IMG/VR virus record: IMGVR_UViG_3300028558_000016
Location: 310,001 to 374,000 of that record
Strand: one strand, 5' to 3'
DNA length: 64,000 bases
The notes below the pieces were generated by a model. That model searched no databases. It was not told the DNA's origin and saw only the letters and a program-made list of their open reading frames with translations. Positions 5,516 to 64,000 of this stretch are shown here, in pieces (position 1 is the first letter of the stretch; each line of letters opens with the position of its first letter). Made by a program: the position numbers and the translations under genes.

Positions 5516-5917
5516 ATGAGAGTATTAGTAATGGGACCACCTGAAAAAGAGTCCATCAAAAAAGTAAAAGAATTCGCAGAGAGCCATGTTTTAAACTTCG
5601 ATGATCTGCTTGATATTAAAAATGGCGCTGAACCTTTTGTTGGAAACAGAAAAGGACATTCTTGTATCATCCCGCAAGATTTCAGAATTGTGTTTTCTGT
5701 TGAAATGCATCCAAGAAAAGATGGAAAAGGATTCACAAAATTAAGAGTGATGTCGATGTCAGTTCCTGCTGAGGGAAAACTTCCGAGTGTTGAAGCCGTT
5801 CAAATGGTTTTACCTGAGCTTGGATTCACTTCAAAATTTGAAGACTCTTATGTTACAATGGAGAATGATGCAAAAGGAGAACCTGTTGCCATAGTAGTAA
5901 TGGAAGAATTCAAATAG
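5516..5917 (+). CDS. Hypothetical protein (TAG stop)
   Basis: ORF in operon context. Confidence 0.6.
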   Translation: MRVLVMGPPEKESIKKVKEFAESHVLNFDDLLDIKNGAEPFVGNRKGHSCIIPQDFRIVFSVEMHPRKDGKGFTKLRVMSMSVPAEGKLPSVEAVQMVLPELGFTSKFEDSYVTMENDAKGEPVAIVVMEEFK

Positions 5918-6063
5918 AATGAGACCTATAGATCATAACGACACCTTATTGTACTTTGAAGAAGAAACTGGTTTTCTTTATAAGAAGAAGAAATATAGCG
6001 GCGCAGATTATTTTTCTCCGTTAAATTTTTGTACTTTAGAGTGTACACCTAAAAAAGATAATC

Positions 6064-6387
6064 ATGGCAACACAATTAACACCGTCAAAGAAGCAATTCA
6101 AGAACATACAGGAAATATACAACTACGCAGAGAACCAAAACGACAACCTGCACGTTGGGGACTTAGACCATACGTCAGCCTGCGAGATAGAACACCGAGA
6201 CGGGTCCAAGTTTTATTTAACCAATGTTCACATGGAATTGGTACGGTTCACAACAAAAACATTCGACGAAACTGTGTACATAGCATACTCGGAACATCAC
6301 CAACCACTCGTGTATATGGAATCGGACCTCGTGTCAGAACCAAAAATAATCCCATTAGGAAAGAAGAAGCTCGTAAAAAAGAAATAA
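6064..6387 (+). CDS. Hypothetical protein
   Basis: ORF with phage-like composition. Confidence 0.6.
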   Translation: MATQLTPSKKQFKNIQEIYNYAENQNDNLHVGDLDHTSACEIEHRDGSKFYLTNVHMELVRFTTKTFDETVYIAYSEHHQPLVYMESDLVSEPKIIPLGKKKLVKKK

Positions 6388-10588: not shown

Positions 10589-10671
10589 GCCCATGTGGCG
10601 GAATTGGTAGACGCGCCGGTCTTAGGAACCGGTGCCTTTAAGGCGTGCAGGTTCGAGTCCTGTCATGGGTA
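10589..10671 (+). tRNA. tRNA-Leu(TAG)
   Basis: Cloverleaf, anticodon arm CCGGT-CTTAGGA-ACCGG, long variable arm. Confidence 0.95.
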
Positions 10672-10752
10672 CAACGTGGTGAAAGTACATTCAGACTGTA
10701 CCATCAGATTTTAGCTACTGATGAAGCATTTGTGGTGATGCTGCTGCGAATT

Positions 10753-10839
10753 GGTGAGATGTCCGAGTGGTTTAAGGAGCAACCCTGGAAAGGTTGTATA
10801 CGGGAAACCGTATCGTGGGTTCGAATCCCACTCTCACCG
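10753..10839 (+). tRNA. tRNA-Ser(GGA)
   Basis: CAACC-CTGGAAA-GGTTG, long variable arm, G73. Confidence 0.95.
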
Positions 10840-10849
10840 CAAATAAAAT

Positions 10850-10934
10850 GGAAGGTTGGTAGAGCGGTCTATTGCACCAGTCTTGAAAACTGGAGATCCT
10901 ACGGGGTCCGTGAGTTCGAATCTCACACCTTCCG
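10850..10934 (+). tRNA. tRNA-Ser(TGA)
   Basis: CCAGT-CTTGAAA-ACTGG, long variable arm, G73. Confidence 0.95.
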
Positions 10935-10939
10935 CAATT

Positions 10940-11027
10940 GGAGAGCTACTCAAGTTGGTTAAGAGGCGCGTTTGCTAAACGTGTAGGACGAGAAATCGTT
11001 GGGTGGGTTCGAACCCCACGCTCTCCG
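10940..11027 (+). tRNA. tRNA-Ser(GCT)
   Basis: CGCGT-TTGCTAA-ACGTG, long variable arm. Confidence 0.95.
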
Positions 11028-11038
11028 CAGAAAATTCT

Positions 11039-11121
11039 GCCCCCATGGTGGAATTGGTAGACACGCAGGACTTAAAATCCTGTGCCCTTAGGGCGTACGA
11101 GTTCGAGTCTCGTTGGGGGTA
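11039..11121 (+). tRNA. tRNA-Leu(TAA)
   Basis: CAGGA-CTTAAAA-TCCTG. Confidence 0.95.
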
Positions 11122-11128
11122 CATAAAT

Positions 11129-11210
11129 GCCGAGTTGGCGGAATTGGTAGACGCGCTGGTCTCAAACACCAGTGACGAAAGTCGTGTGGGTTCGAGTCCC
11201 ACACTCGGTA
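11129..11210 (+). tRNA. tRNA-Leu(CAA)
   Basis: CTGGT-CTCAAAC-ACCAG. Confidence 0.95.
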
Positions 11211-11226
11211 CAAGAAGAAGAATAAA

Positions 11227-12690
11227 ATGGAAAATGATAAAAAATATTGCTTGGTGATGTTTCCTTATCCGTCTGGAGATGGATTGCACATTGGACATTG
11301 CTACAACTACTTGATAGTTGATAGCTATTGTCGTTGGATGAAGAGAAAAGGAATTGAAGTGTTTCAACCATTTGGTTATGACGCTTTCGGTTTGCCTGCG
11401 GAGAATTATGCGATCAAGCATAACAGAGATCCAAAAGAAGTCACCTATGAAAACATAGAAAATTTCAGAAGGCAGATGAAGAGATTGGATACTAATTATG
11501 AAGAGAAGTTAATTACAGCTGATCCATCTTATTTCAAATGGACACAATGGTTGTTCACAAAGATGTTGGAGAAGGGAATTGCTTACAAGAAATTTCATCC
11601 AGTAAACTTTTGTCCATCTTGCGCAACAGTGATTGCCAATGAGCAGGTGAAGGAAGGAAAATGTGAGAGATGCAATTCAGTTGTTGAGATGAAAAACTTG
11701 AATCAATGGTTCTTCAGAATAACAGACTACACAGATAGGTTGATCAAGAACTTGCAATGGTTGGATTATCCCGAGAAAACCAAGAAGCAACAATTACATT
11801 GGTTGGAGAAGATGAAAGAAAACAAGATCGATTGGTGTGTGTCAAGACAGAGAAAATGGGGATGTCCAATTCCTGTTGAAGGAGAGGAAGATACTTTGGA
11901 CACATTTGTTGACAGCTCATTTTACTACTTGAGATTCTTGACGGATTCTGAAGATGAATTCTTGCCAAGAGAAAAATATAAGCAGGTTGATTTGTACGTC
12001 GGAGGAAATGAACATGCTTGCATGCATTTGATTTATGCAAGATTTGTGAACATGTTCTTGTATGACTTGGGAATTGTTGAACAAGAAGAACCGTTCAAGA
12101 AGTTGATTCATCAGGGAATGATCAAGATGAATGGAACAAAGATGTCCAAGTCTATCGGCAATGTTGTTAATCCGGATGGGTATGATCCAGATGAATTGAG
12201 ATTTTACTTGATGTTCATTGGACATTATTTTGATGGCGGAGATTGGAACGATCAAAACATTGTTGGCATAAGAAAATTCTTTGCACGATGGGATAAGCTT
12301 ACTTTTAGAGAAGCAAAGGAAGGAATTGAATCTATGGATTTGACTGAATTTGAAAACCAGATCGATGGTTATGTGAAAGCTTTCAAGTTCAATAAGGTTG
12401 TTAGTTCATTCATGGAATTTTACAACAATAATAGCAGCAGAAACTTTGACAAGGAAACCAGATTGAAGTTGAGAAGAATGTTGGAGTGTTTTGCGCCAAC
12501 AAGATTTTCTAAAGATGAAAGGCCTCCAGTTGGCATGGATGAATTAAGAAGAAAATCCAATGAGTTGTCTGAGAACGTAAACAAGATTGAAGTAATGGTT
12601 AATAAAATTTTTAAAGATGTTGAACAAAAAGAAAATATCACCGGAATATCCGAGAATACCTCACTTGATGGGGAAGTCAAATCTGTATGA
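11227..12690 (+). CDS. leuS: Minimal leucyl-tRNA synthetase (no CP1 editing domain)
   Basis: MFPYPSG-LHIGH, GYDAFGLPAEN, DWCVSRQRKWG, DTFVDSS, GGNEHA, KMSKS; only 487 aa. Confidence 0.9.
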   Translation: MENDKKYCLVMFPYPSGDGLHIGHCYNYLIVDSYCRWMKRKGIEVFQPFGYDAFGLPAENYAIKHNRDPKEVTYENIENFRRQMKRLDTNYEEKLITADPSYFKWTQWLFTKMLEKGIAYKKFHPVNFCPSCATVIANEQVKEGKCERCNSVVEMKNLNQWFFRITDYTDRLIKNLQWLDYPEKTKKQQLHWLEKMKENKIDWCVSRQRKWGCPIPVEGEEDTLDTFVDSSFYYLRFLTDSEDEFLPREKYKQVDLYVGGNEHACMHLIYARFVNMFLYDLGIVEQEEPFKKLIHQGMIKMNGTKMSKSIGNVVNPDGYDPDELRFYLMFIGHYFDGGDWNDQNIVGIRKFFARWDKLTFREAKEGIESMDLTEFENQIDGYVKAFKFNKVVSSFMEFYNNNSSRNFDKETRLKLRRMLECFAPTRFSKDERPPVGMDELRRKSNELSENVNKIEVMVNKIFKDVEQKENITGISENTSLDGEVKSV

Positions 12691-13321
12691 CGATGACATT
12701 GAGATCAATGTTGAGTTAGGGTTTGATGCCTTTGTACAAGAGAAGGTTGATGGAGCAAACTGTGGAATCAGTTGGTTCGATGGACCCATTCTCAGAAACA
12801 GAACCCATGTGTTAAGAAAGGGATTTGAAAGAGACACTCCAGCAAAGAAACAATTTGTTCCAGCTTGGAATTGGTTGCATGAAAGAGAAGATGACTTGAA
12901 GGAGATGATGAAGAAGTGGAATGGACAGATAACTGTTTATGGAGAGTGGATGCTTGCAAAACATTCTATTGGATATGAGAAGCTTCCAGATTATTTTCTT
13001 GCTTATGACATTTGGTCGTGTGAAGAAAACAAGTTTGTTTCTCCGAAGGAATGCAAGGAACTTTTGAATGGGACTGGCATAAGATGGATCGAAGCAGAAA
13101 GAATAAGCATTCAATCGTTCTCTGATTTGAAGTCAGTTCTTGATGTTCCCTCTAAGTACAGAGATGGAATTAAAGAAGGAATAGTTATCAAGAAAACTGA
13201 CGAAGACGATAAGTGGATAGAGAAGACTTTCAAGGTTGTTAGAAAAGATTTTGAAAGGGCTGATGAAAGCTGGAATAAGAAAAAGCTTGAAAAGAATAAG
13301 CTGATAAAGAGGAGTGCCTGA
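12617..13321 (+). CDS. RNA ligase (ATP-dependent nucleotidyltransferase)
   Basis: YPRIPHL, QEKVDGAN (motif I), YGEW, FLAYDI, EGIVIK. Confidence 0.85.
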   Translation: MLNKKKISPEYPRIPHLMGKSNLYDDDIEINVELGFDAFVQEKVDGANCGISWFDGPILRNRTHVLRKGFERDTPAKKQFVPAWNWLHEREDDLKEMMKKWNGQITVYGEWMLAKHSIGYEKLPDYFLAYDIWSCEENKFVSPKECKELLNGTGIRWIEAERISIQSFSDLKSVLDVPSKYRDGIKEGIVIKKTDEDDKWIEKTFKVVRKDFERADESWNKKKLEKNKLIKRSA

Positions 13322-13393
13322 GTGGCTGAAAGGACCGGTCTCGAAAACCGGCACACCCAAAAGGTGTCGTGAGTTCGAATCTCACCTCCTCTG
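13308..13393 (+). tRNA. tRNA-Ser(CGA)
   Basis: CCGGT-CTCGAAA-ACCGG; overlaps the end of the RNA ligase ORF. Confidence 0.93.
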
Positions 13394-13432
13394 CATTTTT
13401 TAATTTGATGATTTTTTTGTAAATTCACTATC

Positions 13433-13738
13433 ATGAATGATGAAGATAAAAAAATAAAGGGATCATTGTTTTTCTTGTACATCGGCAAGCTTAAAGAATT
13501 GGGTTTGATAGAAGGTGGCGCAGGAGATTTGACCATGAAAGGTTTTGACATTGCCATTGATGCCTATAACAGTGGACATAGATTGTCAGATGAGGAGATT
13601 AGTAATTTTCTCGAAGCCGCTCCTGGAATGGACGATGACGACACAATAGAGGCAGCATTTGGAATGATAGCCAAGATGCAAGAAATTGGATTTGATGGAA
13701 TGAAAGAATTGGTTGAACGAGTAAAGAAAACATTATGA
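13433..13738 (+). CDS. Hypothetical protein
   Basis: ORF. Confidence 0.6.
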   Translation: MNDEDKKIKGSLFFLYIGKLKELGLIEGGAGDLTMKGFDIAIDAYNSGHRLSDEEISNFLEAAPGMDDDDTIEAAFGMIAKMQEIGFDGMKELVERVKKTL

Positions 13739-14445
13739 AAAAGAAATTAGTGGTGTTTAGCGGTGCAGGAGTTTCTGCTGAGAGCGGAATTCCTACATTC
13801 AGAGATTCAAATGGTCTTTGGGAAAACCATAAGATGGAAGATGTTGCTACTCCAGAAGGATGGGAGAAAAACAGAGAGCTTGTTCTCAACTTCTACAATC
13901 TTATGAGAACGAAACTCAAAGCAGTTGTTCCGAATAAAGCTCACAATATAATTGCAGAGCTTGAAGAACATTTTGAAGTTACAGTCATCACACAAAACAT
14001 AGATGACTTGCATGAGAGAAGCGGCTCAAAGAAGGTCATACATCTTCATGGAGAATTAATGAAGAGCAGAAGCACATTTAATCCAAATCTAAAATACGAG
14101 TGTACTGGAAATATAAACATAGGTGACAAATGTGAGAAAGGTTCTCAATTGAGGCCTGACATAGTTTGGTTTCATGAAAATGTTTATCACCTTGACACTG
14201 CGGCTGAATTGGTAGAACAGTGCGATATTCTTCTTGTTGTTGGAACTTCATTAAATGTTTGGCCTGCAGCAGGATTGTTATATGTGACGAAACCGGAAAC
14301 TGAAATATATTGCATTGATCCAAAAACAGTTGTTGGAAGTGATATTCAAGTTACTCACATAAAGAAGAAAGCGAGTGAAGGGATGGAGAAATTTAAAAAG
14401 ATTATTCTCGAGAAAAAAGATAAGAAAGAAAATTGCTGTTTATAA
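13735..14445 (+). CDS. cobB: Sir2/CobB NAD-dependent deacylase
   Basis: GAGVSAESGIPTFR, TQNIDDLHE, HLHG, LRPDIVWF, VGTS. Confidence 0.95.
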   Translation: MKKKLVVFSGAGVSAESGIPTFRDSNGLWENHKMEDVATPEGWEKNRELVLNFYNLMRTKLKAVVPNKAHNIIAELEEHFEVTVITQNIDDLHERSGSKKVIHLHGELMKSRSTFNPNLKYECTGNINIGDKCEKGSQLRPDIVWFHENVYHLDTAAELVEQCDILLVVGTSLNVWPAAGLLYVTKPETEIYCIDPKTVVGSDIQVTHIKKKASEGMEKFKKIILEKKDKKENCCL

Positions 14446-14449
14446 TAAT

Positions 14450-14531
14450 GCCCAGGTGTTGGAATTGGTAGACAAGCACGGTTGAGGGCCGTGTGCAGTA
14501 ATGCGTAGGGGTTCGAGTCCCCTTCTGGGTA
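14450..14531 (+). tRNA. tRNA-Leu(GAG)
   Basis: CACGG-TTGAGGG-CCGTG. Confidence 0.95.
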
Positions 14532-14532
14532 C

Positions 14533-48020: not shown

Positions 48021-48092
48021 AACTCCAAGTGGGGATCGAACCCACGACCAAAGGTTTTAGAGACCTACGTTCTACCACTGAACTATTGGAGC
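48021..48092 (-). tRNA. Amber suppressor tRNA (anticodon CUA)
   Basis: GCTCCAA-TA-GTTC AGTGGTA GAAC-G-TAGGT CTCTAAA ACCTT-TGGTC-GTGGG TTCGATC CCCAC-TTGGAGT-T. Confidence 0.9.
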
Positions 48093-54548: not shown

Positions 54549-55451
54549 ATGGACAACTTGTATAATAGTAATGGTTTGATTTTTTGGTCAGAAGCGGAGA
54601 TAAAACTTCGTGAGATGTTCGAGAACTATTTCGTTCAAAAACTGAAGACCAATCTCAAATCTCAGAACAGAGCATTCGACCTTTATAAGTGCGAAGCTCC
54701 ATTATTGACTCCGGTCGATTTAATAAACCCGAATTATACCGAAGAGGATGTTTGGATTCAAGCCAATTTAAGAGGTGCAATGCCGGTTGTTCGTTATGCT
54801 GAAAAGAAATCGAGCATTGACGATGACATGGAAAAATTAATGTCATTGAGCAAAGAACACATGCGTTCCGAAGAGGATAGTTATTACAAACGCATGCTTG
54901 AATTGAACGATCAAATTACAAATGGAAAATTGAATATGGACCTTGCCATTGAAATGGGTGCGGTATATACTGAGATGTATCCTAATCATTCATTAGTATT
55001 AAGGCCTGAAACCACAATGGGAAGTTATGCTTATGCAAGACATTTGCTTAATCCGCACAATGCAGTTAAGATAATGCCACCATTGGTTGTATATCAACAT
55101 GGAAAATCATTTAGAAGAGAACAGGATCAGCCCACAAAATACATGAGGCTTAAGGAATTCTATCAATTGGAATTCCAGATACTATATTCACCTTCTACCA
55201 AGAACGACTATTCTCTAACGTTGATCCCTACAGTAAAACAAATGATAGAGGATATGATTGGTCCGTGTCATGTGGAAGATTCAGACAGACTTCCAAGCTA
55301 TGCTGAATGGACAAGAGATGTCATCTGCGATAAAACAGGAATGGAAGTTTGTTCAATGTCAAAAAGAACTGACTACGAGAACATGAACGTCATTGAGGTG
55401 GCAATAGGAACCGACCGGTGCATATATAATTTCAATTTGAAGAATGGATAA
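54549..55451 (+). CDS. GlyRS-like class II aaRS catalytic core without anticodon-binding domain
   Basis: LRPETTMG, GKSFRRE..RLKEFYQLEFQ (motif 2), VIEVAIGTDR (motif 3); ends 10 aa later. Confidence 0.8.
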   Translation: MDNLYNSNGLIFWSEAEIKLREMFENYFVQKLKTNLKSQNRAFDLYKCEAPLLTPVDLINPNYTEEDVWIQANLRGAMPVVRYAEKKSSIDDDMEKLMSLSKEHMRSEEDSYYKRMLELNDQITNGKLNMDLAIEMGAVYTEMYPNHSLVLRPETTMGSYAYARHLLNPHNAVKIMPPLVVYQHGKSFRREQDQPTKYMRLKEFYQLEFQILYSPSTKNDYSLTLIPTVKQMIEDMIGPCHVEDSDRLPSYAEWTRDVICDKTGMEVCSMSKRTDYENMNVIEVAIGTDRCIYNFNLKNG

Positions 55452-55800: not shown

Positions 55801-56083
55801 GGAAACTCTTAAGACGGAAAAATTAGTGGTTCTCGATTTTTGGGCACCATGGTGTGGACCTTGCAGGACGATTGGTCCTGTCATAGAAGAACTACACACT
55901 GAGTATGGAGAAAATGTGGTAATTGGAAAAGTCAACGTTGATGACAATTCTGAAGCTGCCACAAAATACGGAATCAGAAGCATTCCAGCAATTTACTTCA
56001 TTAAGAATGGAGAAGTTGTTGACAAGATAATTGGCGCAGCTCCTAAAACGGAGTTTGTGGCAAGGATCGAGGCTAACAAATAA
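55769..56083 (+). CDS. trxA: Thioredoxin
   Basis: DFWAPWCGPC. Confidence 0.97.
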   Translation: MAQEVTDSNLEETLKTEKLVVLDFWAPWCGPCRTIGPVIEELHTEYGENVVIGKVNVDDNSEAATKYGIRSIPAIYFIKNGEVVDKIIGAAPKTEFVARIEANK

Positions 56084-56084
56084 T

Positions 56085-56636
56085 ATGGCGAACAATAATT
56101 TCAAAAGGCCTTACAGGCCAATTCAGAAACAAAGGGAACACAAGATCAATGAAGAGATCAGACATCCCAATGTGAGAGTTACAGGTGATGACATTGAGTC
56201 ACAGGTTGTAACCATCCAAGAGGCATTGCGCATGGCAAGGGAAGCTGGAGTTGATCTCGTTGAGATTGCTCCAAGCGCAAACCCACCTGTGTGCAAGATA
56301 ATCGAATATGGAAAACTCCTTTACGAGAAAAAGAGAAAAGACAAGGAGAATAAAAAGAACCAAGATCAGGTTGAAATAAAAGAACTTCGATTGACACCAA
56401 GCACAGACGAACATGATTTGCAATTCAAATGCAACAATGCAATGAAATGGTTAGCTGATGGAAATAAAGTGAAAGCCGTTGTAGTATTCAAAGGAAGAAT
56501 GATCAAATATAAAGAGATGGGAGAAATCCTTTTGCTTAAACTTTCTGTGATGCTCGAAGACCATGGAAAAGTTGAACAGCTACCAAAACTCGAAGGCTTC
56601 AAAATGACCATGATGGTCATTCCAAAAAAGAAGTAA
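56085..56636 (+). CDS. infC: Translation initiation factor IF-3
   Basis: INEEIR, DLVEIAP.ANPPVCKI..YGK, IKELRL.P..DEHD, GNKVK..FKGR. Confidence 0.95.
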   Translation: MANNNFKRPYRPIQKQREHKINEEIRHPNVRVTGDDIESQVVTIQEALRMAREAGVDLVEIAPSANPPVCKIIEYGKLLYEKKRKDKENKKNQDQVEIKELRLTPSTDEHDLQFKCNNAMKWLADGNKVKAVVVFKGRMIKYKEMGEILLLKLSVMLEDHGKVEQLPKLEGFKMTMMVIPKKK

Positions 56637-57207: not shown

Positions 57208-58275
57208 ATGAAAAAATCTGTAATAAAAGTTTTTTATACAGAAAAACAAGTAAACACTAACGCAAACATAGAAGCTGCATCGAAATCAAAATCACCACTC
57301 AAACCGGTTCTTTTGATGAAAGCTTTAGATGTTCTTGGATATGGAAAAAATCTGGATATTGATCCAGATTTTTTTCCATTTAAAGACGAGGACTTCCTGC
57401 TTGCGCACACTAAAAATTACGTTGAAGCATTTTTCAATGGTGTTCAACCATTGTGTCAAAGTAATTTCTTACCGTGGAGCCAAGAATTGGCAGACTCAGT
57501 TCGTTACACTAATGCGAGTTTGTATAACGCAATTAGATATGCTTACTTAAATCCTGACCAAGTTACATTAAGTCCTACATCAGGATTCCATCATGCAATG
57601 CCTCACAGAGGCGATGGATTTTGTACATTCTCAGGACAGGTTATTGCTGCAGAAAAAATGTATCAAGAGTTTGGAGTGTCTGGTGCTGTTCTTGATTTGG
57701 ATGGTCACACAGGAAATTCCATAGATGATGCTCGTGGTTTTGCTAAAACAATTGATTTAGCAATTCCGCACGAATATAATTTTGCTCAGCTTAAAGGTAG
57801 TGATAAACACTATCTCGACTCTCTTTTAGAAGCAATGGATAAAATTGAAACAGGTGTATTGGAAAATAAAATACATTATCTAATGTGGTGCCACGGTGCA
57901 GACTCTCACGAGGATGATGATTTTGGTGGACAGGTTGACACAGAATATTGGGTTAAATGTTCTGAAGCATTTTATGCTTGGGTGAATCAATTGGATGCTA
58001 AATTGATTGCAATGGGAAGAAAACCTCTTCCAGTCATTTTAAGTTTATTTGGAGGTTATCGTGATGATGATTATTATTCAGTTATTTCGTTGCACATAAA
58101 AGATTTGACAACATGTCTTAATCTTCTTTGTGGAGAAAACATAAATTATGATGTGAACGTAAAAGATAAACGTCCAACAATAAAACGTAAACCACCTGAA
58201 AAATGGTTTGATGGAATGCCGCTATCTCTTTTGAATGTTCTTTACCCAGGAAAATATGACGATATAAACACATAG
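57208..58275 (+). CDS. Histone deacetylase-family (Zn-dependent) protein
   Basis: GFHHA..GFCTF, LDLDGH.GN, GADSH.DD, GGY; TAG stop. Confidence 0.88.
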   Translation: MKKSVIKVFYTEKQVNTNANIEAASKSKSPLKPVLLMKALDVLGYGKNLDIDPDFFPFKDEDFLLAHTKNYVEAFFNGVQPLCQSNFLPWSQELADSVRYTNASLYNAIRYAYLNPDQVTLSPTSGFHHAMPHRGDGFCTFSGQVIAAEKMYQEFGVSGAVLDLDGHTGNSIDDARGFAKTIDLAIPHEYNFAQLKGSDKHYLDSLLEAMDKIETGVLENKIHYLMWCHGADSHEDDDFGGQVDTEYWVKCSEAFYAWVNQLDAKLIAMGRKPLPVILSLFGGYRDDDYYSVISLHIKDLTTCLNLLCGENINYDVNVKDKRPTIKRKPPEKWFDGMPLSLLNVLYPGKYDDINT

Positions 58276-58349
58276 GGCTTGGCCGGAATCAGGGGACTGC
58301 GGATTCTAAACCCGCTGAACCGTGGGTTCGACTCCCACCCAGGCTACCA
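58276..58349 (+). tRNA. Second CUA-anticodon tRNA with degenerate D-arm
   Basis: GGCTTGG/CCAGGCT-A-CCA acceptor, GCGGA-TTCTAAA-CCCGC arm, GTGGG-TTCGACT-CCCAC T-arm. Confidence 0.7.
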
Positions 58350-58714: not shown

Positions 58715-59026
58715 ATGTTTGATTTTCACCAAAAAGATACACACGCAACTAATTTCTCTATAGACAAAAAAGATCTATATGAGAAGGCAATGGAAATTTT
58801 TAAAAGCTATAATCCAAAAATAAAAATATGGATTGAAGATACAGCATTTGATTCTTTCGGAAGACCCTATTATGACCATTTGAGTTTACATACAGATCAA
58901 GGTCATAAAGGTAAAATTAAATGGATAGGATTCTTTTCTACCATCAATAAAAGAAAGCTCCTGGCTGGAGAAATAAAACCAAAACAAACAATCAAAGAAA
59001 AACTTAAAGTATTTTTAAACCTATGA
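58715..59026 (+). CDS. Hypothetical protein
   Basis: ORF. Confidence 0.55.
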   Translation: MFDFHQKDTHATNFSIDKKDLYEKAMEIFKSYNPKIKIWIEDTAFDSFGRPYYDHLSLHTDQGHKGKIKWIGFFSTINKRKLLAGEIKPKQTIKEKLKVFLNL

Positions 59027-59964
59027 AAACGTTAACAGAGAACAAGTCCAAAACTTTATCTAAGTTTTTGGAAACCCTAAGGGATAAAAGAGGATTTGAC
59101 GCTGAAATTTATACAGAAAGAAAAGCGTATGCAATAAATAAATTCTTTAGAGAAAATAATCTTGATTGTGCTGTCATTGGACTTTCTGGAGGTGTCGATA
59201 GTGCTGTTGCATTTTCTCTTCTCGAATTTGCTTCTCGCAGACCAGACTCACCTATCAAAAAAATTCTTGCATTAGCAATGCCAATATATGGAAATGGAAC
59301 AACGAACCAAACTGATGCTACTAATAAAGCAACGAGGTTCATAACAAATTTTCTTGGTACAAAAAGAAAAAGGTACAATGATAAAGTAGAGTTTGAAATG
59401 TTTGATCTTTCGCATGCCTACGAATCATATCAATATGGACATGAAACAGACGCATGGTCTAACGGACAATTAGCGAGCATTGTAAGAACTCCGTTTCTAT
59501 ATTATAATGCCGCATTGTTACAAACAAAAGGATATAAATCAATTGTGGTTGGAACTACAAATCGTGATGAAGGTTCTTACATTGGCTTCTTTGGAAAAGC
59601 TTCTGACGCAATGGTCGATCTTCAACCGATAGCAGATATACACAAAAGCGAAGTGTATCAGGTTGCAAAACTTTTAGAAGTTAGTGATGAAATAATAAAT
59701 GCAACTCCGGCTGGTGACGTTCACGATGGCAGAGTTGATGAAGAAATGATTGGTGCTCCATATTGGTTTCTTGAATTATTCCTTCTTCAAAAACAATACA
59801 AAGAGACTGCCAAGTTAGAAACGTTTGAAGACGGAGAAATTTATGGAAAATATTACGCATCAATAGAAAGCATTCACGAAAAAAATAAACACAAATACCA
59901 GGTAGGTTCACCAGCACATTTTATTGATGTGATGGAACGTAAAATAGAAGGAGGTTGGCAATGA
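59023..59964 (+). CDS. nadE: NH3-dependent NAD+ synthetase
   Basis: GLSGGVDSAV, VGTTNRDE..GFFGK..D, PIADIHKSEV, DEEMIG. Confidence 0.9.
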   Translation: MKTLTENKSKTLSKFLETLRDKRGFDAEIYTERKAYAINKFFRENNLDCAVIGLSGGVDSAVAFSLLEFASRRPDSPIKKILALAMPIYGNGTTNQTDATNKATRFITNFLGTKRKRYNDKVEFEMFDLSHAYESYQYGHETDAWSNGQLASIVRTPFLYYNAALLQTKGYKSIVVGTTNRDEGSYIGFFGKASDAMVDLQPIADIHKSEVYQVAKLLEVSDEIINATPAGDVHDGRVDEEMIGAPYWFLELFLLQKQYKETAKLETFEDGEIYGKYYASIESIHEKNKHKYQVGSPAHFIDVMERKIEGGWQ

Positions 59965-60731
59965 TACAAATAGTTAATACAGAAAAACCAGCAATAGAAA
60001 AACTTCCAGGCGGTTGGGAGCCTGATTTCTCAATTCAGCTTAAAGAGACAACTGATTGTAACGAAGAAATGTTCAAGCGAGCATCAGTCTACACGAATTT
60101 ATTTTCTTCAGAAGAATGTGATGATATAATAAAAAAATTCATGCAGTCTCCGCGATTTGAAAATGTAACCGTTCAAGGAATAAAAGATGTTCCAGACGAT
60201 AGAATTGGAAGCATAAGAACAACTGCATGGAGCACGAAAATTGCAGATGAGATATGGGAAAAGAAATTCAAATTCTTTATGCAAGACATCGCATGTAGCA
60301 CAAAAACTCCAACTGATTGGTGGCAAGGGGATAACGAAAGAAGATTATGGAAACCAGTTGGCATTTCTCCCATGTTGAGATTCATGAAGTATGAAAACGG
60401 TGGACAACATTATGCTCATTACGATGCAGGCCACATATACAAGGATGATAAATTCAGAACACTTTGTTCGTTTGTAATGTATTTGACCACCAATGAAAAT
60501 GGTGGAACCACGAGGTTCATAGAAGACCAACAGAGTGATCTTAATGAATGGGAAAGAAAACACGAAGATTGGCCGAGAGAATCAAGAGAAGATGAAGTGC
60601 TGTTCAGATCTAAACCTATAAAAGGAAATGTTCTGGTATTTCCACACAGAATGTGCCATGACGTTGAAAAATATTTTGGGGACACTCCAAGGATTATTAT
60701 AAGAGGTGATGTTTTATTTGAAGCAATATGA
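59955..60731 (+). CDS. 2OG-Fe(II) oxygenase (prolyl-4-hydroxylase-like)
   Basis: RFMKY..G..HYD, YL..GG.T.F, HD, R.DVLF. Confidence 0.85.
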   Translation: MAMIQIVNTEKPAIEKLPGGWEPDFSIQLKETTDCNEEMFKRASVYTNLFSSEECDDIIKKFMQSPRFENVTVQGIKDVPDDRIGSIRTTAWSTKIADEIWEKKFKFFMQDIACSTKTPTDWWQGDNERRLWKPVGISPMLRFMKYENGGQHYAHYDAGHIYKDDKFRTLCSFVMYLTTNENGGTTRFIEDQQSDLNEWERKHEDWPRESREDEVLFRSKPIKGNVLVFPHRMCHDVEKYFGDTPRIIIRGDVLFEAI

Positions 60732-60979
60732 ATTGGAAAGTAATATTCTTCAAAGAATATAATGATTGGGTTCCATATCAAAATGAATCTGTATGTGAAT
60801 GTGTTGAAGAAGCTTGTCTTAAAAAAGTCTACAATCAATTAAATCCTGGAATTGAAGCTGACCATGATTATAAAATTGAATTTAAAGATGGTGAAATCGT
60901 TCATATTCTTTTTGGAGTAATAGTTTCTGGAAAAATTAAGTTTACTAATAAATTTGCTAATGAATTGGAAAGTAAATAG
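60728..60979 (+). CDS. Hypothetical protein (TAG stop)
   Basis: ORF. Confidence 0.5.
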   Translation: MNWKVIFFKEYNDWVPYQNESVCECVEEACLKKVYNQLNPGIEADHDYKIEFKDGEIVHILFGVIVSGKIKFTNKFANELESK

Positions 60980-62423
60980 AGATACATTTTATAAAGAACT
61001 TCTTCCAGTCCTTGGAGAAAAAGGAATTGCTGAAGCCGGTTTCTTTGAGGATGCTGCAACGAAAGACGAAGATGTCTTAAAGACCACAAAGGTTTTGTGC
61101 ACACCTCTTTCTTTTTTAAAACCTGCAACAGGACATCCTTGCATATTGCTAACGACTGGTTCTTTTTGTCCATTGCATCCAGGCCACATCAATATGATGG
61201 AAAAAGCCAAGGAGCATCTTGAAAAAAATGGATACAATGTAATTGGTGGTTTCATTTCACCTGGACACGATGAATACATATCTGCCAAGAATAAAGAAAA
61301 AGCAATTCCAATACACTATAGAATAAGAACCATAACTGAGATGATTAAAAACCACGATTGGCTTTCTGTCGATCCATGGGAAGGAATGTTCTGTAAGGTT
61401 GCTGTAAATTTCACAGATGTTTATATAAGGCTTGAGGCATACATCAGCGAACACCTAAAGAAAGACATTCCAATATTCTTTGTTAGTGGTGGTGATAATG
61501 CGAGATTTGCTTTGACCTTCATGAAGAAAGGAAATTGTGTGATAGTTAACAGACCTCCGTATGACGATAAATTCGAACATTATAAAAAAGTTTTAAAGGA
61601 TTGTCCTAACATCCATTTCGTTGAAGGTGGAATTCCTATATCTTCAACTGAATTAAGAAAGGAAGCTTTTGTTCCAGATGAAAAGAAAAACTTATTAATA
61701 AGAGTTGAAAACACTGAGAAGAGAGGAGTTCTAAGAATAATGTATAAATATTTCAATAATATAGAAAAGAAGGAACTACACAGTCAGAAAAAACACTTTT
61801 ATGGAAAGATGTCTCTTGGCGAGATGATAAGTCTTGACTCACTTCTTAAATCAGTGCACAACTTGAAAATATCAAGATCCTATGACATTTTCGGTGCAAA
61901 GAAGATGGGATTCACAAATAGACCAGGAACTCCATCATTAGAGGAACAACTGTCTGAAATAGAGAATGGGGAATACACTCTGTTCGATGATGACATCCAC
62001 AGTGGTTCAACCATGAGATTTGCTAAATCGTTAATAGAGGGAACAGGCTCTAAGGTGAAAGAAGTGACATCATTAAACATCTCACCAGATGGTTTTGAGA
62101 TTCTCGATTCAAGAGATTTTTTCATAGGAGGAAAGAACAATGGCCTTGTGATTAAAATGCCTGATGGAAAAAACGTCAGAGCTCCTTATGTTTATCCTTA
62201 TGTTTGTCCGTTTATTAGAGGCTCAATAGACAGTCCAATGCAGTTTTCAATAGATATTTGGAAGATGAACATGGATCTATTTGAAAAGACTAATCAAACA
62301 TTGGGTGACATGCCATTCCTCCAAGACCTATTCAAAAGAGCTGGATTTAGTTTGACAGATTCAATGTATGACATCTGTAAATGGCATCATGATTATTTGG
62401 TTTTGGTACTTTTCACCAAATAA
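60960..62423 (+). CDS. NMNAT-like cytidylyltransferase fused to a PRTase-like domain
   Basis: TGSFCPLHPGH, SPGHDEY, VDPWE, GGD, ISSTELR; LFDDDIHSGST. Confidence 0.8.
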   Translation: MNWKVNRDTFYKELLPVLGEKGIAEAGFFEDAATKDEDVLKTTKVLCTPLSFLKPATGHPCILLTTGSFCPLHPGHINMMEKAKEHLEKNGYNVIGGFISPGHDEYISAKNKEKAIPIHYRIRTITEMIKNHDWLSVDPWEGMFCKVAVNFTDVYIRLEAYISEHLKKDIPIFFVSGGDNARFALTFMKKGNCVIVNRPPYDDKFEHYKKVLKDCPNIHFVEGGIPISSTELRKEAFVPDEKKNLLIRVENTEKRGVLRIMYKYFNNIEKKELHSQKKHFYGKMSLGEMISLDSLLKSVHNLKISRSYDIFGAKKMGFTNRPGTPSLEEQLSEIENGEYTLFDDDIHSGSTMRFAKSLIEGTGSKVKEVTSLNISPDGFEILDSRDFFIGGKNNGLVIKMPDGKNVRAPYVYPYVCPFIRGSIDSPMQFSIDIWKMNMDLFEKTNQTLGDMPFLQDLFKRAGFSLTDSMYDICKWHHDYLVLVLFTK

Positions 62424-62502
62424 TTTTTCTATTTCTTTTATATGGCATCATGATTATTTGGTTTTGGTACTTTTCACCAAATAATTTTTCTATTTCTTTT
62501 AT
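62381..62502 (+). repeat. Exact 61-nt tandem duplication
   Basis: 62381-62441 is identical to 62442-62502. Confidence 0.9.
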
Positions 62503-62968: not shown

Positions 62969-63349
62969 ATGAAGTAGATTAACACATACCCAAAATTAAC
63001 CATCGTAACAAGACAAGATCTTGCACCTGGTTACCAGTTAGTACAAACGGCCCATGCCATGGCTGATTTTGCAACTTCTTATCCTAAGGAGTTTCAACAA
63101 TGGCATTCCACCTCCAATTATTTAGCGTGCCTATCTGTTAAGGATGAAAATTCTTTACAAGCTCTTTCACATAAACTTATGTGTGAAGATATTAAGCACA
63201 TCACATTCACTGAACCCGATCTCGGAAATCAGATCACTGCAATTGCTATTGAGCCAACTGATATGGCTCGAAGAATATGTAGCTCATTTCCATTGGCATT
63301 AAAGGAATGCACAAACGGATTAAACAAACATTCAATAATAAAACAATGA
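62969..63349 (+). CDS. PTH2-like peptidyl-tRNA hydrolase with in-frame TAG at codon 3
   Basis: ATG AAG TAG ATT..PKLTIVTRQDLAPGYQLVQTAHA..FTEPDLGNQITAIA..FPLAL. Confidence 0.75.
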
Positions 63350-63663
63350 ACAAGTACGAAAATTTAAAAGAAAACCTTGCAACAAAAGGAACAGGTCAAA
63401 TGAAATGCTTTGGCAATTCAATGACTCCTATATTGGAAACTGGAGGTTTGCTAACCTTTGTGAAGCAAGAAACTTACGAGATAGGAGACATCGTCTTCTG
63501 TAAAGTAAAAGGTCGTTACATCGATGCGCACAAGATAACAAAGAAAGATGCGGCAGGAAGATTTCTGATCTCAAACAATCATGGATGGGATAACGGATGG
63601 ACGAAAACAATTTACGGTAAAGCAATAAAAGCAGAATATCCAACTAAAACAAAAATGTTATGA
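63346..63663 (+). CDS. S24/S26 peptidase-like protein
   Basis: GNSMTP, GDIV, HKI, NN. Confidence 0.65.
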   Translation: MNKYENLKENLATKGTGQMKCFGNSMTPILETGGLLTFVKQETYEIGDIVFCKVKGRYIDAHKITKKDAAGRFLISNNHGWDNGWTKTIYGKAIKAEYPTKTKML

Positions 63664-63923
63664 CTTAGATAGTAAATTGCGAGAAAAAAGATTACATCAT
63701 CTTTCACTTTAACAAGATGCACTTAACTGATCAGACTATTCCAATGTGGACGATCAAACATAAAGGAGAAACATATTATGTTAATCATATAGAAGTTTCT
63801 CCAGGAGTTGGGTTCTCGACGAAAGAAACGCCAGAGAATCCTCATACAAAAGGAAGCTTGAAGTTCAGAGCGAAGTTGAAGATAGAAGAAATTGATGGAC
63901 AAGTGATGGCGACGATATATTGA
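63660..63923 (+). CDS. Hypothetical protein with in-frame TAG at codon 3
   Basis: ATG ACT TAG ATA.. in frame with ORF 63717-63923; ATGA overlap with the upstream stop. Confidence 0.65.
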
Positions 63924-63928
63924 AACAA

Positions 63929-63998
63929 GGCGATGTGACCGAGTGGTAGGTACAGATCCGCAAGATCTGGTACGGGGGTTCGAATCCTTCCATTGCCT
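63929..63998 (+). tRNA. tRNA-Cys(GCA)
   Basis: GGCGATG/CATTGCC-U73; CAGAT-CCGCAAG-ATCTG. Confidence 0.88.
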
Positions 63999-64000
63999 CA

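Follow-up and report, generated by a model that had tools for sequence, protein, structure and literature searches.

Reading of stop codons as sense by phage-encoded suppressor tRNAs has been documented in Lak, crAss-like and other gut phages, where TAG or TGA is decoded in phage genes while the host uses the standard code, and a regulatory role has been proposed there too (Ivanova 2014; Borges et al., bioRxiv 10.1101/2021.08.26.457843). In those phages 26-71% of the genes carry in-frame stops, which are scattered along late genes, and the preprint mentions neither a peptidyl-tRNA hydrolase nor N-terminal stop codons of the kind described here. The nearest design is an engineered device in E. 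coli, the suppressor-tRNA feed-forward "leak dampener", in which the target gene carries a nonsense codon and is made only when a co-expressed suppressor tRNA is present, and which works with both amber and opal codons (Ho et al., NAR 2021, PMC7969014). The autoregulated translation-factor genes prfB (early in-frame UGA plus +1 frameshift) and infC (AUU start) share the logic that an unusual decoding event early in a translation-related gene makes its output report on the state of the translation machinery, though they sense the gene's own product (RF2, IF3). In programmed readthrough, as for the Q-beta A1 protein, the stop ends a complete protein and host tRNAs read it at low frequency. The lambda bar minigenes consist of a start codon, one sense codon and a stop, are free-standing, and act by toxicity in pth-defective cells.

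Many large phages that use the standard code also carry suppressor tRNAs for which no target genes were known. The authors of the XacN1 genome wrote that they could not identify any (PMC5852040), and the papers on Atu_ph07 and phiKp24 leave the role open (PMC6102473, PMC8386662). In the full-text literature searches we made, no description was found of N-terminal stop codons in phage Pth2-like genes, or of defined targets for suppressor tRNAs in standard-code phages.

Here we analysed a stretch of 64,000 nucleotides (the window) of a 482,156-bp IMG/VR contig from a rhizosphere metagenome (IMGVR_UViG_3300028558_000016; window position = contig position minus 310,000). Two neighbouring genes in it begin with a start codon, one ordinary codon and an in-frame TAG, which we call a gate. 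The relevant features are as follows.

62969..62977 (+), gate 1, leader ATG AAG followed by in-frame TAG (62975-62977), the next codon being ATT
62969..63349 (+), PTH2-like gene (divergent peptidyl-tRNA hydrolase 2 fold, predicted), read through the TAG, with 123 residues after the gate
63346..63663 (+), gene with a predicted S24/S26 peptidase fold between the two gated genes, joined to both by ATGA overlaps and without a gate
63660..63668 (+), gate 2, leader ATG ACT followed by in-frame TAG (63666-63668), the next codon being ATA
63660..63923 (+), gene of the "FHFNK protein", named here after its invariant motif (uncharacterised family, predicted all-beta), read through the TAG, with 84 residues after the gate
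63929..63999 (+), tRNA-Cys(GCA), 5 nt after the FHFNK gene
48021..48092 (-), tRNA(CUA) of the amber suppressor type, 15 kb upstream of the operon
58276..58349 (+), doubtful tRNA-like element with a CUA "anticodon" and an encoded ACCA end, abutting the TAG stop of the deacetylase-like gene

In both frames there is no ATG, GTG or TTG between the TAG and the ORF starts found by a standard caller, 63059 and 63717. Nevertheless, the stretches between the TAG and those ATGs are coding. When the stretch is included, the Pfam PTH2 (PF01981) score of the PTH2-like protein rises from 20.9 bits, below the 23-bit cut-off, to 31 bits, and the match to phrog_1866 goes from E 1e-7 to 6e-18. The structural model (pLDDT 88.9) superposes on archaeal Pth2 and human Bit1 with TM 0.72-0.76 (3erj, 2zv3, 1wn2, 1xty and Bit1 1q7s), and the stretch forms its strand 1 and most of helix 1. 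A profile of 11 phage sequences against PDB Pth2 2zv3 gave E 9e-9. The NCBIfam Pth2 equivalog models score 20 and 17 bits, far below their cut-offs of 126 and 82; in the alignment to 2zv3 the phage family lacks the two-residue GK insertion of the GKGK loop but keeps an invariant Asp, Thr and His. In the FHFNK protein, whose model has pLDDT 93.6, the stretch forms strand 1 (pLDDT over 90) and carries H13, N15 and K16, three of the 13 invariant residues seen in the alignments. So translation must begin at or before the codon after each TAG. No hit for the FHFNK protein was found in Pfam, PHROGs, NCBIfam, PADLOC, PDB, BFVD or the ESM Atlas, although at least 3689 protein clusters, all unnamed, exist in metagenomes. 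The gene between the two is supported by Pfam Peptidase_S24 (25.9 bits, E 8e-6) and a weak hit to archaeal signal peptidase I, and it is absent from this position in the related loci that we read.

The bare motif ATGNNNTAGAT is not over-represented, with 3 matches against 3.3 expected, and it is the position that is non-random. Of 30 ATG-NNN-TAG sites in the window only these two are followed by long open frames (123 and 84 codons, the next best having 44). A scan for ATG, 1-8 codons and a stop found nothing convincing in the window beyond the two, while a third candidate (ATG AAA AAG TAG ATT AAC) lies just outside it, at 5702-6199 of the fetched locus L003, which runs past the window end, and has no relatives in IMG/VR. 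The window is otherwise ordinary standard code, 95% coding, with 97 ORFs ending in TAA 63, TGA 28 and TAG 6 times. No promoter or terminator above chance was found in the operon.

The tRNA at 48021-48092 is solid (ARAGORN; Rfam tRNA, 67.7 bits). The original prediction counted two CUA tRNAs in the window; ARAGORN calls the element at 58276 a tRNA, but Rfam gives no tRNA hit, only a weak match to the 3′ end of tmRNA (20.5 bits). Instead, a solid tRNA(CUA) of 71.6 bits lies 278 nt beyond the window end, right after the tRNA-Cys (ARAGORN; Rfam tRNA, 46 bits), at window-equivalent 64278-64350 (L003:5610-5682), and this is the suppressor most relevant to the operon.

The decisive evidence is comparative. 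Relatives of the FHFNK gene in about 60 IMG/VR contigs mostly begin with a Shine-Dalgarno sequence, ATG, one to four codons, TAG, and then the conserved sequence. Of 58 distinct genes, 36 are TAG-gated, one is gated after a GTG start, and 21 have a plain ATG; most of those not TAG-gated lie directly behind a PTH2-like gene that is itself gated (ATG, 1-3 codons, TAG). A wider search with a profile of the PTH2-like family gave 66 distinct genes, of which 61 are TAG-gated (55 with no possible canonical start before the conserved RxDL motif), two are TGA-gated, two have a normal start and one is unclear. The leader is ATG plus 1-7 codons, most often one, and its codons vary freely (MK, MKK, MT, MN, MKDT and others). 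Eleven further copies on MAG contigs, evidently mis-binned phage DNA, add 9 more TAG gates. In the pooled loci, ATG, 1-4 codons, TAG and 80 or more open codons occurs 114 times and 92 of these fall in the two families, while the TAA and TGA equivalents are at background level. The gate belongs to a subfamily and not to all phage Pth2 genes, as the Pth2 of XacN1 and the Aeromonas phiWae14 relative start normally.

Ordinary ORFs in the same loci end in TAA 227 (66%), TGA 72 (21%) and TAG 44 (13%) times, whereas the PTH2-like gates are TAG 61, TGA 2 and TAA 0; the nominal P of 6e-52 ignores shared ancestry, and the counts are not phylogenetically independent. A tRNA(CUA) gene lies within the fetched flank of 53 of 61 TAG-gated PTH2-like genes, 44 of 58 FHFNK genes and 10 of 11 MAG copies, always on the same strand as the FHFNK gene and often 40-170 nt or only tens of nucleotides away. 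In Rhizobium phage RHph_I1_18 the FHFNK gene is unannotated, begins MSEFM-TAG, and ends about a dozen nucleotides before a tRNA(CUA). However, 8 of the 61 gated loci, and the closest relative (L004), show no tRNA(CUA) in the fetched flank, though it may lie further away, and the neighbourhoods of the suppressors of fHe-Yen9-04 and phiN3, like XacN1, have no such gate.

Moreover, the gate codon and the anticodon covary. Both TGA-gated genes sit beside a tRNA(UCA) and have no tRNA(CUA). Agrobacterium phage Atu_ph07 has a TGA six codons into its Pth2 gene, and according to its authors its single suppressor tRNA has the anticodon UCA (PMC6102473). The related Sinorhizobium phage Phosso has GGAG, a spacer and ATG AAG TAT TAG at the same gene, and a tRNA(CUA) 4.6 kb upstream. 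In both phages the deposited annotation starts the gene at an internal ATG that cuts off the first strand.

The upstream ATG is a real start, as 24 of 36 gated FHFNK genes have a Shine-Dalgarno core 5-9 nt before it. The base after the gate is a purine in 55 of 55 PTH2-like gates (A in 43, G in 12), a context that may favour suppressor tRNAs in E. coli (Bossi 1983; Miller and Albertini 1983). No RNA structure that would promote readthrough was found near either gate (fold z-scores −0.8 and +1.3). The CUA tRNAs fit the general tRNA model with ordinary cloverleafs, and selenocysteine- or pyrrolysine-type insertion is not indicated; the "tRNA-Pyl" label of ARAGORN reflects only the anticodon. An initiator-type CUA tRNA starting at UAG was also rejected, since the anticodon stems lack the three G-C pairs and a conserved ATG with a Shine-Dalgarno sequence precedes the gate.

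The identity of the tRNAs gave little indication of the amino acid that would be inserted. Nearest-neighbour comparison is weak and mixed, with phage tRNA-Lys(CUU) genes the commonest match for the module tRNAs, and the discriminator bases vary (A, G, U). Public protein sets show Q at the gate, but this comes from gene callers using code 15, as the DNA has TAG in the two cases checked, and homologues without a TAG do not align residue for residue at the N-terminus. A class II synthetase-like gene at 54549-55451 has a homologue next to the tRNA(CUA) of Phosso, but in a third phage it sits in an ordinary tRNA array after three tRNA-Gly genes with no suppressor, so no specific link is supported.

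Taken together, these results support the central inference of the original prediction, that an amber codon at codon 3 makes these proteins depend on a suppressor tRNA. Translation would start at a normal AUG, and one to a few codons later the ribosome would meet a stop codon that matches the anticodon of the phage's own suppressor tRNA. If charged suppressor tRNA is available and beats release factor 1, the ribosome would read on and make the full protein, and if not it would release only a di- to penta-peptide. The cassette would therefore behave as an AND gate or coherent feed-forward loop, in which transcription plus a working suppressor gives protein. Where the FHFNK gene has no gate of its own, it overlaps the end of a gated PTH2-like gene and is probably gated through translational coupling. 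That the tRNA actually decodes the gate, and that this tunes output to suppressor activity, is inferred from comparison and not from protein or ribosome data; nevertheless, we consider this reading probable. The suggestion that the off state works like a lambda bar minigene feeding Pth remains a conjecture; only the form (ATG, one codon, stop) is shared, and here the frame continues into a conserved protein.

Two rival explanations are about equally unlikely. In the first, which the original prediction gave as its alternative, the ribosome terminates at the stop of a mini-ORF and re-initiates at the adjacent ATT/ATA, a weak start normally policed by IF3, which the phage encodes (56031-56636). 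The codon after the gate is indeed ATT in 35 of 55 and ATA in 4 of 55 PTH2-like genes, and ATT, ATA or ATC in 14 of 21 FHFNK genes, so some re-initiation cannot be excluded. In over 200 genomes of cluster C mycobacteriophages, ATG or GTG is followed by TAG and then GTG, with the Shine-Dalgarno sequence ideally spaced for the second start, so that there the gene can start without suppression, although a tRNA(CUA) and tRNA-Cys still follow it. However, a mini-ORF could end in any stop, yet TAA is used in 0 of 63 gates, and re-initiation does not explain the match to the anticodon. Moreover, 16 of 55 PTH2-like gates and several FHFNK gates are followed by codons that are not plausible starts (GTA, GTT, ACA, AAT, CAC, CAA, GAA), and in hosts that use Shine-Dalgarno sequences the sequence is spaced for the upstream ATG.

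In the second, the early TAG is read at a low level by near-cognate host tRNAs, or when RF1 is limiting, and simply keeps expression very low. The gated loci without a tRNA(CUA) in the flank fit this view, and very short ORFs may terminate poorly. It does not explain the tight, same-strand linkage to tRNA(CUA) or the switch to TGA where the suppressor is UCA, and it lacks the support of a readthrough-promoting RNA structure.

Still less likely is that the phage as a whole uses a code in which TAG is sense. The genome carries at least two solid tRNA(CUA) genes, TAG stops are rare, and recoding outside the about 69 kb of the 482-kb genome examined is not excluded, but the window is 95% coding under the standard code, including long structural-type genes with no in-frame TAG, and the gates fall almost entirely in the two families. 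The cultured carriers RHph_I1_18, Phosso and Atu_ph07 are likewise annotated under the standard code, and there the gated genes are simply missed or truncated. Decay or assembly error is refuted, since both TAGs are identical in Logan contigs of a second sample and the first also in two further samples with 0 differences, and the gate is conserved in about 100 distinct homologues with intact downstream coding sequence.

The purpose of the gate can only be guessed. The PTH2-like enzyme is tied to the suppressor even in ungated relatives (loci L002, L166 and L167), which also sit beside tRNA(CUA), so this link does not depend on the gate. tRNA-Cys lies within 1.2 kb of 21 of 58 FHFNK genes, while every other ordinary tRNA type does so in 2 or fewer, and several loci also carry a tmRNA. 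A reasonable reading is that the products deal with consequences of suppression, such as peptidyl-tRNA from readthrough or from very short ORFs, or act on the suppressor itself, and the gate would then scale their synthesis to suppressor activity. More tentatively, the suppressor tRNA, the PTH2-like enzyme and the FHFNK protein might form a self-contained, mobile control circuit, in which the tRNA licenses translation of its own companion proteins and these in turn manage the cost or the level of suppression, for example by clearing peptidyl- or aminoacyl-tRNA species or by acting on the suppressor or tRNA-Cys. This would be the long-missing function of "orphan" suppressor tRNAs in standard-code phages, and it could also be a stepping stone towards full stop-codon reassignment.

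What is new here, compared with the scattered recoding in gut phages, is that the gated members of two gene families carry exactly one stop, within the first few codons and mostly next to the tRNA, in loci that are otherwise standard code. Unlike the leak dampener the arrangement is natural, widespread and tied to specific translation-related genes; unlike prfB and infC the sensed component would be a separate tRNA, and feedback by the product is not shown; and unlike the Q-beta A1 case the stop precedes the whole protein and a dedicated tRNA is encoded alongside. The finding exposes an annotation problem, since these genes are currently missed, truncated at a downstream start, or silently translated with Q at the stop. 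It names concrete, conserved and probable targets for suppressor tRNAs in standard-code phages, would give a natural counterpart to the amber-suppression switches built in synthetic biology, and links suppression physically to a peptidyl-tRNA-hydrolase-like enzyme, tRNA-Cys and sometimes tmRNA.

Further features in the window are as follows:

10589-14532, tRNA cluster
54549-55451, minimal class II aminoacyl-tRNA-synthetase core
56031-56636, IF3 gene
57208-58275, histone-deacetylase-fold gene
58276-58349, doubtful tRNA-like element called as tRNA(CUA) by ARAGORN
59023-59964, NAD synthase
59955-60731, 2OG-Fe(II) oxygenase
60954-62423, cytidylyltransferase-like gene
62381-62502, tandem duplication

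The tRNA cluster holds only long-variable-arm tRNAs, four tRNA-Leu and four tRNA-Ser isoacceptors, while tRNA-Cys and the CUA tRNAs lie elsewhere. The IF3 gene is complete, with both Pfam domains at 94 and 99 bits, and lies in a neighbourhood with the synthetase-like gene, NAD synthase, the 2OG-Fe(II) oxygenase and the cytidylyltransferase-like gene. A perfect 61-bp tandem duplication (2.0 copies, 100% identity) spans the 3′ end of the cytidylyltransferase-like gene and the sequence after it, such that the last 14 codons and the stop are repeated just downstream.

The synthetase-like gene encodes a 300-aa core, most like glycine-tRNA ligase and without an anticodon-binding domain; copies also lie at L159:1902-2651 and L174:8001-8693, in two of the loci fetched for comparison. 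A 49%-identical copy sits next to the tRNA(CUA) of phage Phosso, where it is annotated as a serine-tRNA synthetase and lies beside a cysteinyl-tRNA synthetase. In a third phage, however, it sits after three tRNA-Gly genes with no suppressor nearby.

The element at 58276-58349 was called by ARAGORN as a tRNA(CUA) with an encoded ACCA end, starting directly after the TAG stop of the histone-deacetylase-fold gene. Nevertheless, Rfam does not see a tRNA, only a weak match to the acceptor and T-arm end of tmRNA, and the element may be tRNA-like or degenerate. Just outside the window, in the locus L003, a 277-nt spacer (L003:5333-5609) between tRNA-Cys and the third tRNA(CUA) contains T-arm-like and acceptor-like stretches that neither ARAGORN nor Rfam calls as tRNA. 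Eighteen nt after the third tRNA(CUA), a 165-codon frame (L003:5702-6199, window-equivalent 64370-64867) starts ATG AAA AAG TAG ATT AAC. The TAG and the two codons after it (TAG ATT AAC) are the same as in gate 1, that of the PTH2-like gene. No relatives were found in IMG/VR, so this possible third gate cannot be judged.

Public protein collections list the genes of P0046 (L155:4001-4561) and P0051 (L156:70-633), two protein entries, with Q where the DNA has TAG, because the gene caller switched to code 15; the look-up of these entries showed that the DNA does not translate to the listed protein. About 100 of the 120 best clusters of the FHFNK protein, the product of the second gated gene, have this M-x-Q-I-E-Y type of N-terminus.

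The FHFNK gene also occurs in other arrangements among the fetched loci. In the two jumbo phages Atu_ph07 and Phosso (L068/L150 and L069), the FHFNK domain is the C-terminal part of a 174-177-aa protein with no gate. The three-gene order Pth2, a roughly 108-aa gene, then FHFNK is kept, followed by a metallophosphatase and preceded at some distance by an RnlA-type RNA ligase. In nine loci (L023, L025, L027, L028, L030, L032, L037, L055 and L057), permuted tmRNA genes, with tag peptides such as ANDTRFALAA, lie within about 0.5-4 kb of the long form of the FHFNK gene and its tRNA(CUA). In L042 (4983-5552) the FHFNK gene starts normally but has its TAG at codon 88, between the N-terminal domain and the C-terminal domain of the long form, while in L005, L060 and L062 the short form ends in TAG. 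The stop may also be used to choose between short and long products.
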